A DNA stretch of 64,000 nucleotides, taken from positions 62,001-126,000 of the forward strand of contig JAPMXV010000034.1 of assembly GCA_026936335.1 (NCBI GenBank), given 5' to 3'. Below the pieces are notes generated by a model. That model saw only the letters and a list, made by a program, of their open reading frames with translations, was not told the origin of the DNA and did not search any database. The position numbers and the translations under genes were made by a program. The DNA is from Mantamonas sphyraenae STR306. Its lineage: Eukaryota; Protista; CRuMs. This document shows positions 34,354 to 38,629 of the stretch, piece after piece (within the stretch, counting starts at the first letter, position 1; the number at the start of each line of letters is the position of its first letter).

Positions 34354-35332
34354 TCACATGCTGGCATTCATTTCCTCCACATCGAGCACAATCTTGCCTC
34401 GCTTCTTGGCAACCTCCTGCGGGTCCTGCAGCTGCTCGAGGGCGGCAAAGACAGCACGAATCATGTTGGGCTTGTTGCGCGAGCCAATGACCTTTGTGAC
34501 ACAGTCCTCAATGCCAAAGGCACGCAGAATGCGCATGACCTGCTGGTTGGCCGTGTAGCCCGTGTCCAGTGGAGACCGGCGCATGATGACCTTGGTTGCG
34601 CAGAACTTGGCCTCCACGTCGTGGCAGATGGTTTTGCCCTTGTGCAGGGGCACCTGGATCAGGTTGCGATGTGCCTCTGCAGCCGCTTTGGATGTGGCTG
34701 TGCCGATTTCGCCTCCCTTGGCAAAGCCGAAGCCTCCCGTGCCCTTGCCGTTGCCCACCACCACAATCGCGTTGTACGAATACACTTTACCATACTTGGT
34801 GACCTTGCTCACGCGGCCCACGTGGACCACATCCTCCACAAAGTCGTTCTGCGTGAACACAGGTGTGAGTGCTCTCGTGTGGGTCCAAAGCGGGGCCTAC
34901 AACCCTTCCGGGATGGCGGCCGCATGCCGCTCCCGCTCAGAGGCCCTGTGGCCAGAGCGTGCATAGCACAGCAGAGGCGTGCACACTTGCAAAGCCCCGT
35001 TGACGCGTCACACTGGCCATGGACAGGCTCTCCTGGTCGTTCTGCTCATGGCTTACCTTGTCATGCCTCAATGTGGTGGCGAGCAGGTCGTCGGTGATTT
35101 CCGGAAAGTACAGCCTGCGCTCAGCAGCAGGATCGTGTGCCGACGCCGTGGTCTTGCGCAGACCAGGTTCATGGCCAGGCAGCCAAGAGTACTCTCGCTG
35201 CTGCATGTTCTGTGCCTCATTGGTCCCCAGGACGACCAACGACGGCCGTTGCCAACTGCGCTCCACAAGTCGACTGCTCCCAGCCTCCATGACCGTGCGT
35301 ACCCTGTGTGCTGATGTGCGACGTGCAAACAT
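34354..35332 (-). CDS. MRPS5: Mitochondrial ribosomal protein uS5m
   Basis: RVSKVTKYGK...AIVVVGNGKG..GFG.AK and GI.D...KVIGSRNK.N.IRA motifs; Arg-rich N-terminal presequence; one intron ending at ~34897. Confidence 0.88.
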
Positions 35333-35625
35333 ATGTGCCTGATATTATGTGTGGTGTGTGTGTGTGTGTGTGTGGGTTGATGTGTGGCTGTTTGTGGCTG
35401 GATGCACTCGCGCGCTCGCACGCAAGAAAATGAGCACTGGTTGAGGCCTTTGTTTCTGTCGTCACATCTTCTCTCTGCCGGTGGTGAATAGGGTTGGGCA
35501 CACCCTTTTGCCCTGTTTGTTTGCAGCGCCAGTCCTTCCCTTTGCACCAGGTGAGTGTCACGCGTCGACATGCGCTTTTCCCCTCCTGCCCCTCCTCCGA
35601 ACACGGCTCCTGTCCGGACGCGTGC

Positions 35626-35748
35626 GCGTGCATAGGATGATCATCTGCAATAACGGACTAGAGTTTCTGAACGAGAAGTCAAGCGCTCGTTGTTGATGAG
35701 AAATGTTGCATTTCTGCCCCACAAAACGTGGGTGTAACTGATGCACGC
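35626..35748 (+). ncRNA. Box C/D snoRNA, predicted guide for LSU rRNA Um2421 (yeast numbering), snR78/U52-like
   Basis: Terminal stem GCGTGCA/TGCACGC; C box AGGATGA 35634; D' CTGA 35667; C' TTGATGA 35693; D CTGA 35738. The D' guide CGGACTAGAGTT is complementary to the conserved LSU sequence GACUCUAGUC(CG). Confidence 0.85.
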
Positions 35749-36056
35749 TTCGCGCCCGGACCCGCTCGCGTCTCGTTTCCGCGCAACGCGCTTTCCTGCC
35801 CTGTTTACCCATCCCTCTTGTACTCACGCCATGCATGCCCGCTTGCTCTCATGCACACCTGCCCTGCGACTCATGCCAGGCGATGCTGAGTGCACTCCAA
35901 GTCCGCAGCGAACTGCGCAAAAAACTCCACACAAAGGTATGTGCTGCCCTCTGGCGAAGTTTTGGACCCCGTCCTCCGTCCTGTGCCCGTCCTCCCTTCC
36001 CCCTCCCCCGTCTGCCAACTTCCCGCCGCCACTGCACGGGCACGCCCCCACGCTAC

Positions 36057-36157
36057 GATCAATGATGATTCGAATTACCGGATGAGGCGCACAACTTTAC
36101 TGCAGTGCGCTGAATGATTCCAATCTTCGAGGCTGCAACTTTGTTGTGTCTGAGATC
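36057..36157 (+). ncRNA. Box C/D snoRNA, predicted guide for SSU rRNA Um578 (yeast)/Um627 (human), snR77/SNORD65-like
   Basis: GATC/GATC terminal stem; C box ATGATGA 36062; guide GAATTACCG complementary to 18S CGGUAAUUC; D' ATGA 36082; internal stem GCGCAC/GTGCGC; C'-like TGAATGA; D CTGA 36150. Confidence 0.88.
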
Positions 36158-36291
36158 TTGGGCCACCTTCCTTGGCAGCTGGCCTATCTTTTGTCCCTTT
36201 TGGCCGTTTCATGCGTTTACGCATGTGTGCAACGTGTCTTCACTCATTTGTCGTGTTGTCTCACTCCGTTTTTCATTTTCTCTGCGCCTGC

Positions 36292-36879
36292 TCACAGACG
36301 CACAATGTCCACACGTGTGCGAGTGTGCACTTCGTGCTCCTTTTCAACCTTTTCCATCTGTTCGACGTCCAGCTGCTTGCCGTCGAGGATCTGGTCCAGG
36401 CTCAGCGTGTGCACAGTCACCTTGGCCAACGTGCCAGCGGCCTTGCTCTTTGCCAGACGGCCTGGGTTGATCAACAGCACACCGTGGAACTCTTTCACGA
36501 AAAAGTTGAATGAACTGGGCACCACCAAAATGTCTGGCGTCACATTCATCTCCAGCGCCTGCAGTTGTGCGTAATCCAGAGGGAGAGCCTCGCCATGCGG
36601 AAACACGGGGTAGAACGTGTGTTGTTCCACCAGGTGGTTGGCCAACCTTCCCATGCGGTCCTTGCGTCCTCGCGAAATCTCGCCAGCAGACATGTCCAGC
36701 AGCACGTCCTCCGATGTCACACCAATCACAGTGTCGTTCACCTGGATCACACACGGGTTCGATGTGCACATCATTGTCACCTCCTTGTCCGTGTTCACGC
36801 CATTGTCCAGCGTCGTCGGCGCATACTCCGTCTCCATACCGTCCACGCTGATCTTGATGGTCGTGTCACTTGTCATCGA

Positions 36880-36914
<35 letters not shown>

Positions 36915-38629
36915 CTGTTGCCTCGTACAAACTCACACGCTTCTCTGGAAAAGCCCCCACGCGGCTGATGATGTTGTTCTTGCGAGGCAGCGGCGGCTGC
37001 GGATAAACGCACTCGGCGACCGCATCGTTCACAGAAGGCACCAGCACCACCTGAGTCTGCGCTCCCACCAGCTTTTCCAACTCGTCTGCAATCCTGGCGT
37101 CAAACAGCTCTTCCACAGTCATCGGCTCGCCCACACGTCCTCCCGAGCTTGATGCAGAGCCTTCTTCCGTGCTGCTGCTTCCGCTGCTGCTGCTGCTCGA
37201 CCCACTCAAGCAGCTGTGGCCTTCCTGCACAAACGGACCAATCAACAACAGAACATCCGGTTTCTCCTCCTGCGCAATCTCCACCAGGGCCTCAAAAGCC
37301 TTAAAGTCCAGGTTGTTGGAGAACGTGAAAGGCCCGCACGCCACAAACAGGCTCATGGGTGCCTTCTGTTGGCCCTGGTCGTCCAGATTGTGATCAAAAA
37401 GCTGGCCGAGTCGTGTGCGTGCCTTTGATCGTCGTGCACCCTCGTGCACTTTGGTCACCGTCAAGCGGTTGCCCTCCAGATCCTCCGCGTCCATCAGGCC
37501 CTCCACCACAACCACCTGGCCAGGAAACAGGGAGAAATCCTGTAGCGAGCTGAGGTCCAGCTCGATCCAGTTGCCATTGAGTCCCTCCAGCATCACGTTG
37601 TCGTTGTTCAGCCGGCCCTCGCCCGCTCGACACACGCGGCCGCCCACAAGGATCTCGCCCGCCCGACACACTCCTGCGTCGACCAGCGGCTTGTCATCCA
37701 GCTCATCCCCTGCAGCTGCAATGATTTCCTCGATACTGCGCTCCATGTGGTCATACAGGGCCGAGGCAATCGACTGGTTGTTCTGCAGCATGTACCTGTA
37801 CGGTCGCTGCAGATTCGATGCTCCCTGGTACTCGGTCACATGCACGTCTGCGCGTGCGTTGCCAGTGCGTGTCTTGAGCTGTCCGCCATACGTGTGCACC
37901 ACCTTGTTCTTCGTCTTGCGGTTCGCAAACTCTCGGTTGGTCGTGTCCGGTGTCCACGCCGGTGTCTGGGCATCTTCCACACGCGAGCGCTTTGGTGACA
38001 TCGTCGTCTTGTCCGGCGACTGGCGCTTGCGTGAGCCTTCGAACCTGAGGTGTTGGCGCGTGTATGCGCGCGTGTGTCGCCGTGTCAGCGCTTCCCGCCA
38101 AAAATTATCAACTCGCGCGCTTTTCCCGCGCGTTTTCTCTTTGCGCCGCTGTCAGCTCCACAGAGACACTTACATGTCCGCAGTCACGTTTGCTGACGCC
38201 TGGTAGGTGCGGTTCTGCACTCCACTCTGCTTCTGGAACTGCTTGGGCCTGTTCTTGCCCGCATTGCGCGCCATCTTGTGCTTCTGCTTGAGCTGCTTCT
38301 GCTTCAAATGCCGCTGGAACGTCTTCAGCGAGTCCAGCTGCGGCGCATCCAAGTTCTTGTTCACTGCAAACGCCTCCCACTGGGTGGCAAAGTCTGTGGC
38401 CGTCAGCCCAAACGTGGCGCAGATGGTGAGACCTGTGGGGGCGGGCGGGAAAGTGTGTCAGGCAACTTTGGGCTGATCAGGCCATTCGCTTCGACGTCCC
38501 ACGAGACACACACACACACGCAGTCAGAAGAAGCTGCTACAAACACGTACATTCACGCTCCACCTGTTCATTCGCCAACGTGTGGTTGAAGCGAGTAAAC
38601 TCCTCTTTGATTTGTGTCAATGTCGCCAT
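36292..38629 (-). CDS. POLA2: DNA polymerase alpha subunit B
   Basis: N-terminal (C.TFGL...F.TQWEAF), FSLFPGQVVVVEG, ACGPFT, PDVLLLIGPFV, PDILVVPS and INPGRL motifs; 2 introns at the 5' end. Confidence 0.95.

Follow-up and report, generated by a model that had tools for sequence, protein, structure and literature searches.

The 64,000-nt stretch of Mantamonas sphyraenae STR306 DNA analysed here, hereafter the window (contig JAPMXV010000034.1, positions 62,001 to 126,000 of the forward strand), contains an interval of 960 nt between the genes of ribosomal protein uS5 and of POLA2, both of which are encoded on the minus strand. On the plus strand of this interval lie two small nucleolar RNAs (snoRNAs) of the box C/D class that are firmly assigned, from their predicted pairing with the ribosomal RNA (rRNA) of the same organism, to the snR78/U52/snoR37 and snR77/SNORD65/snoR77Y types. 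In yeast, the snR78-snR72 cluster (fungal 'cluster I') opens with snR78 and snR77. The best overall explanation of the Mantamonas locus, which we consider likely, is that two functional C/D snoRNAs are carried, one per intron, by a short spliced non-coding host gene. The locus is present in a single copy in the genome (25,061,354 bases searched in 78 contigs). Its elements are listed below in window coordinates, with strand.

35626-35748 (+): box C/D snoRNA 1, snR78/U52/snoR37 type, 123 nt, complete architecture
36057-36157 (+): box C/D snoRNA 2, snR77/SNORD65/snoR77Y type, 101 nt, complete architecture
35400-35550 (+): putative first exon of the non-coding host, no coding potential, ending at cag/GTGAGT
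35551-35879 (+): putative intron 1, 329 nt, donor cag/GTGAGT, acceptor CAG
35880-35936 (+): putative internal exon, 57 nt, between acceptor 35879 and donor 35937, no coding potential
35937-36297 (+): putative intron 2, 361 nt, donor aag/GTATGT, pyrimidine tract, acceptor CAG
36298-36400 (+): putative last exon, following acceptor 36297, antisense into the 3' end of POLA2
34354-35332 (-): gene of mitochondrial-type ribosomal protein uS5 (Pfam Ribosomal_S5 and S5_C)
36292-38001 (-): POLA2, DNA polymerase alpha subunit B (Pfam DNA_pol_E_B and DPOA2_OB)

snoRNA 1 is closed by a perfect terminal stem of 7 bp (35626-35632 with 35742-35748) and carries a C box AGGATGA at 35634-35640 and a D box CTGA at 35738-35741. 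Reading the C box as an overlapping ATGATCA is less favourable, as it loses the G6-C1 pair with the D box that AGGATGA keeps. The D' guide (35654-35665) is followed by a D' box CTGA (35667-35670), a 5-bp hairpin (35671-35690), a C' box TGATGA (35694-35699) and two more hairpins, and the predicted fold beats 200 of 200 shuffled sequences (z = -3.0). On the large subunit (LSU) rRNA of Mantamonas itself, the D' guide can form 12 bp with GACUCUAGUCCG, comprising 11 Watson-Crick pairs and one G-U pair, which places U2655 opposite position 5 of the guide in the context GAC[U]CUAGUCCG (GAC[U]CUAG). The 3' end of this site reads CCG in the Mantamonas LSU where the yeast LSU has UUG, and the guide fits the Mantamonas variant. 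In Rfam, snoRNA 1 aligns weakly with snoZ157 (RF00333, clan CL00063; 17.9 bits for a threshold of 55, E = 4.1), a model of the plant Z157/R69/R10 snoRNAs, and its guide and D' box GGACUAGAGUUUCUGA agree with the RF00333 consensus. The same clan holds SNORD52 and snR78. We also observed a complementarity of 8 nt between the loop of the D'-C' hairpin (35676-35685, AAGUCAAGCG) and LSU GCUUGACU, a segment located directly 5' of the guide duplex and overlapping it by 4 nt; it is possible that this loop provides accessory pairing, as described for snoRNAs of yeast.

snoRNA 2 has a shorter terminal stem of 4 bp (36057-36060 with 36154-36157), a C box ATGATGA at 36062-36068 and a D box CTGA at 36150-36153. 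Its D' guide (36072-36080) lies inside a 13-nt spacer separating the C box from the D' box ATGA (36082-36085), which is followed by a 6-bp hairpin (36087-36110) and a C' box ATGATTC (36114-36120). As read from the sequence, U6 of this C' box is able to pair with A1 of the D' box, and an ATGATTC-AAT motif is found at both the C and the C' boxes. An alternative D' box (CTGA at 36110) and a short form of 63 nt were rejected since the C' box would then vanish; they are also disfavoured by the D'-hairpin-C' layout, which parallels that of snoRNA 1. With CGGUAAUUC of the small subunit (SSU) rRNA of the organism, the D' guide can form 9 Watson-Crick pairs that fill the spacer, and U575, in the 530 loop, then stands opposite position 5 in the context CGG[U]AAUUC.

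The positions U2655 and U575 are numbered on the LSU and SSU of the organism, whose ribosomal DNA (rDNA) was found with a 24-nt 18S pattern; one repeat was taken, and its SSU, 5.8S and LSU genes were bounded with Rfam. LSU U2655 corresponds to the yeast Um2421 site, served by snR78, U52 or AtsnoR37, and SSU U575 to the yeast Um578 site, served by snR77, HBII-135 or AtsnoR77Y; yeast, human, Arabidopsis and Dictyostelium all methylate both sites (PMC3511168; PMC8817022). In Neurospora crassa they are likewise targeted by D' guides, those of CD5 and CD24 (PMC2780460). Both Mantamonas RNAs exhibit the C and D boxes, the terminal stem and the in-register guide of at least 9 bp that characterize the box C/D class, and they are the expected orthologues of guides that can be followed back to the eukaryotes' last common ancestor (LECA). 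A full-architecture scan of the window, demanding a C box, an in-register 9-mer match to rRNA, a D box and a terminal stem, returned exactly two loci, both of them these snoRNAs; with shuffled rRNA the same scan returned a mean of 0.198 loci per window, and two or more with P = 0.012. Eight further C/D-like candidates in the window were discarded as having no credible guide. The regions upstream of the D boxes of the two snoRNAs fold as hairpins, and a search of these D guides for rRNA targets gave nothing convincing, the best being G-U-rich duplexes of 10-11 bp. The initial annotation of this DNA, made from the sequence alone, had proposed one complete C/D snoRNA per interval, directed by the D'+5 rule to the LSU site of snR78 and to the SSU site of snR77, and boxes, stems, scan and pairing with the organism's own rRNA all bear this out. 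It had also suggested a comparison with the Rfam models snR78, SNORD52, snR77 and SNORD65, none of which matches at threshold: the best match is the weak one to snoZ157, from the same clan as two of them. Between 35000 and 37000, the snR77, SNORD65 and snoR77Y models give no match to snoRNA 2 even at E <= 10, and at this level the same 35000-37000 region yields, besides snoZ157, chance matches to SNORD48, mir-297 and others.

The interval surrounding the two snoRNAs appears to be devoid of protein-coding function. A codon log-odds model trained on seven Pfam-confirmed genes of the window gives negative values in all six frames from ~35400 to 36300. The region had initially been described as free of open reading frames (ORFs), which is inexact since it is overlapped by spurious ORFs, the longest of 178 aa, but the absence of coding potential that this description implied is confirmed. 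The putative host would begin with a first exon that starts upstream of its donor at 35551 and downstream, on the plus strand, of position 35332, where the start codon of uS5 lies; 308 nt separate snoRNA 1 from snoRNA 2. The strongest indication of splicing comes from the donors. The consensus AG/GT[AG][AT]GT occurs at just 13 sites on both strands of the window (128 kb), and two of these stand 75 and 120 nt upstream of snoRNA 1 and snoRNA 2, respectively. The probability of finding such a site between -130 and -40 nt of a random point is 0.6-1.3%; this situation is true of both snoRNAs, and the joint chance amounts to ~1e-4.

The remaining splice signals are consistent with this arrangement. 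In intron 1, the branch could lie in CTCAT or in CTCAC, whose A residues at 35851 and 35826 precede the acceptor by 28 and 53 nt, respectively, and this acceptor follows 177 nt free of AG (35701-35877). In intron 2, the candidate branch CTCAC (A at 36263) lies 34 nt from the acceptor, which is the first AG past the branch and terminates an AG-free run of 117 nt. AG-free runs of at least 117 nt are common, with ~41 in the window, and constitute weak evidence for acceptors. The four splice strings claimed initially (at 35551, 35879, 35937 and 36297) are all found where they had been placed and delimit intervals of 329 and 361 nt around 57 nt; the non-coding host with two introns that had been deduced from them gains support from the lack of coding potential, the intron grammar of the genome and the non-random position of the donors.

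This intron grammar was derived from other genes. Introns inferred in the window measure 77-132 nt, use GTAAGT or GTGAGT donors and mostly contain CTGAC 20-30 nt before CAG (the motif is present in 9 of 11). The GTGAGT and GTATGT donors and the CTCAC branch proposed for the host have counterparts in genuine COPA or RPS30 introns of this genome. The RPS30 introns combine GTGAGT and GTATGT donors with a CTCAC branch. The COPA intron (contig C67, about 225870-226138) is 268 nt long with the structure GTAAGC ... CTCAC ... CAG, carries a box C/D snoRNA itself, and its exon junction coincides with the boundary of Pfam profile positions 264 and 265. The splice signals that flank each of our two snoRNAs are of types usual in this genome, the commonest branch, CTGAC, being absent. 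As to the COPA snoRNA, it has an external stem of 8 bp and a D' guide of 13 bp to LSU CCACAGCCAAGGG, whose position 5 faces A2595, a residue two nucleotides away from the C of the snR64/U74 type. A further case is provided by a U24/snR24-type box C/D snoRNA on the contig of the window (C34, ~555960-556190), whose guide can form 13 bp with LSU GCAGAUCUUGGUG. It lies within an intron-like GTGAGT ... CTGAC ... CAG interval, on the opposite strand and immediately beyond the stop codon of a gene on the plus strand, and this interval at ~556 kb is a candidate for another intron of a non-coding host.

Among the known systems closest to the Mantamonas pair is the fungal one. Saccharomyces cerevisiae snR78 and snR77 share with it the target nucleotides, the 5'-to-3' order and the strand; they are polycistronic, whereas the Mantamonas pair is putatively intronic as in most fungi, where each snoRNA occupies one intron of a non-coding host (PMC3596301). 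The fungal cluster continues in the order snR78-snR77-snR76-...-snR72 and is intronic in most lineages (PMC3596301). Only two members are found in Mantamonas, equivalents of snR76 to snR72 being absent from the locus because both flanks are occupied by protein-coding genes. The Mantamonas RNAs (123 and 101 nt) are also longer than those of yeast, with hairpins in place of a second guide, and similarity in sequence is limited to the guide and the boxes. Plant snoR37 possesses a second guide, and none was found in snoRNA 1. The putative host resembles both the fungal cluster hosts and the animal UHG/GAS5-type hosts in its short non-coding exons, one snoRNA per intron and consensus splice signals; it differs from such hosts in that it would be just ~0.9 kb long, squeezed between two genes and terminated antisense to a coding sequence.

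The same order recurs in a second non-fungal lineage. In Dictyostelium discoideum, CD22 (26S-Um2687, the snR78 site; chromosome 5, 3090012-3090090, plus strand) precedes CD21 (17S-Um571, the snR77 site; chromosome 5, 3090313-3090388, plus strand) by 222 nt on the same strand, as listed in Table S5 of PMC8817022. These RNAs have the same target sites as the Mantamonas pair (PMC8817022, Tables 1 and S5), are shorter (79 and 77 nt) and are reported as intergenic (PMC8817022). The parts of that paper that were searched do not treat CD21 and CD22 as a pair also present in yeast, and in its main text the two names appear only in the table (PMC8817022). An snR78-type guide followed on the same strand by an adjacent snR77-type guide is therefore found outside fungi in both Mantamonas and Dictyostelium.

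The identification of the two RNAs, the intronic host and the antiquity of their linkage can each be questioned, and some of the observations weigh against them. For the RNAs themselves, Rfam at gathering thresholds matches nothing in the whole window, and the guide of snoRNA 2 is just 9 bp long, with a second fit of equal length on SSU UGGUAAUUC (8 Watson-Crick pairs and one G-U) that would place at position 5 U156, a residue that to our knowledge is not a known methylation site. Loose C/D-box criteria are matched 17 times in the window, and shuffled rRNA produces a 9-mer match beside a C box ~2.5 times per window, so one or both elements might be chance look-alikes or decayed pseudogenes, neither expressed nor functional. 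We judge this highly improbable: two loci of full architecture are rarely obtained in the shuffled control, methylation is conserved at the two target sites, there is covariation between the first guide and the LSU sequence of its own organism, the two elements are adjacent on one strand, and with a single-copy locus no other element was found to serve these sites. If the snoRNAs are genuine, RNase III-type cleavage and exonucleases might release them from a dicistronic precursor that is not spliced, as is the case in Dictyostelium, plants and S. cerevisiae, the splice-like motifs being incidental. Such a precursor would accommodate the intergenic location of the Dictyostelium CD22-CD21 pair as well as several oddities of the proposed introns: CTGAC is absent from both, their lengths of 329 and 361 nt exceed the usual 77-205 nt, the distances from snoRNA to acceptor (131 and 140 nt) contrast with ~60-90 nt in two reference introns, and the last exon would awkwardly overlap the POLA2 coding sequence in antisense. 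A second possible acceptor of intron 1 (CAG at 35906-35908) also speaks against the spliced model. The dicistronic precursor is nevertheless unlikely in our opinion, as two complete 8-nt donor sites would have to stand upstream of the two snoRNAs by accident, as the COPA intron is taken to demonstrate intronic processing of snoRNAs in this genome, and as the 308-nt spacing and the pyrimidine-rich, AG-free tail preceding each CAG fit introns. The boxes, the match of the guides to rRNA as encoded in the rDNA of this organism, the absence of coding potential and the placement of the splice signals are direct observations, and a spliced non-coding host with one snoRNA per intron is in our view the likely arrangement that accounts for them.

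The linkage is not pan-eukaryotic. The human SNORD52 and SNORD65 genes are located on different chromosomes, the chicken HBII-135 homologue resides in a host intron of its own without linkage, and Arabidopsis snoR37 clusters with snoR22/23/80 without any snR77-type partner. Human SNORD52 (U52) and SNORD65 (HBII-135), like Arabidopsis snoR37 and snoR77Y, act on the same sites without being linked (targets in PMC3511168). In none of 80 environmental U52/snoR37-type loci, 66 of which are informative with at least 400 nt of downstream sequence, is an snR77-type guide present on that strand in the 3 kb that follow downstream. These absences are compatible with an independent origin of the adjacency in Mantamonas, Dictyostelium and fungi, by chance or convergence among mobile snoRNAs, in which case the pair would be silent on ancestral order. 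Hoeppner and Poole did not find snoRNA positions to be conserved as far back as LECA and concluded that mobility had erased the ancestral organisation (PMC3511168), Canzler et al. date the assembly of the fungal cluster to the root of Ascomycota (PMC5824354), and one pair alone, not the rest of the yeast cluster, is held in common. Luo et al., however, found the fungal cluster in Basidiomycota and Rhizopus as well (PMC3596301), and three deep lineages agree in the two guides, in their strand and in their order, the genes being a few hundred nucleotides apart. A given ordered adjacency would, by a rough estimate based on ~45 C/D snoRNAs per genome, arise by chance in ~1% of cases per lineage; inheritance is therefore favoured over convergence, which we regard as a doubtful though by no means negligible explanation. 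The initial annotation had taken the organism to be an apparently non-fungal protist, and M. sphyraenae indeed belongs to CRuMs, sister to Amorphea; its proposal that the linkage predates fungi is strengthened by the Dictyostelium pair and weakened by the absences in Arabidopsis, chicken and the 66 environmental loci. We hold an origin before fungi with moderate confidence. The snR78-snR77 order was probably inherited from the common ancestor of Amorphea and CRuMs and followed by later losses, and we lean slightly towards seeing in it the relic of a snoRNA cluster of that ancestor, which animals would have lost while fungi, Dictyostelium and Mantamonas kept it. The environmental survey also provided several contigs with two or three tandem U52/snoR37-type copies ~155 nt apart, a layout resembling that of plant clusters.

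The Mantamonas locus as such is ordinary, consisting of expected orthologues in what is probably a known type of non-coding host arrangement; what is unusual is the gene order found in fungi (Obazoa), Dictyostelium (Amoebozoa) and Mantamonas (CRuMs). If the linkage does date from the ancestor of Amorphea and CRuMs, it would represent a counter-example to the prevailing idea of an erasure of ancestral organisation by mobility (PMC3511168) and the first snoRNA-snoRNA linkage traceable across eukaryotic supergroups. The pair could also serve as a marker for deciding which mode of snoRNA expression came first, that from polycistronic or that from intronic clusters, being intronic in most fungi and putatively in Mantamonas, polycistronic in S. 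cerevisiae and intergenic in Dictyostelium.

In the mechanism that we propose, the host transcript would start in a promoter region that also serves uS5 in the divergent direction, and would terminate in antisense orientation at the 3' end of POLA2. The introns excised from it would be debranched and trimmed by exonucleases up to the small nucleolar ribonucleoprotein, which would free the snoRNAs. The D' guide of snoRNA 1 would then direct fibrillarin-dependent 2'-O-methylation of LSU U2655, and that of snoRNA 2 would direct 2'-O-methylation of U575 in the 530 loop of the SSU. We infer in this way, from the DNA, the transcription and splicing of the host, the accumulation of the RNAs and the methylation of both sites.

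The neighbouring genes complete the description of the locus. The snoRNA unit is divergent from uS5, with which it probably shares a promoter region, and convergent with POLA2. The uS5 gene comprises two exons on the minus strand, 35332-35057 and 34850-34354, both backed by coding scores and separated by an intron of ~206 nt that reads GTAAGC ... CTCAC ... CAG; the first of them is an N-terminal extension exon. A (GT)n microsatellite (35345-35376), responsible for the chance Rfam match to mir-297, closely precedes the start codon of uS5 and falls in the region presumed to act as a bidirectional promoter. The best protein-database identity of POLA2 is 24-32%. The GC content of the window is 56-60%, and that of the published M. 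sphyraenae FALCON assembly is 59.19% (PMC10492846). Elsewhere in the genome, three tubulin loci (contigs C37 and C39) have identical Pfam Tubulin scores and intronless frames of 460-461 aa. One of them encodes a beta-tubulin at most 96% identical to any database protein, and these intronless loci fit a genome that is poor in introns and missing from the protein collection.

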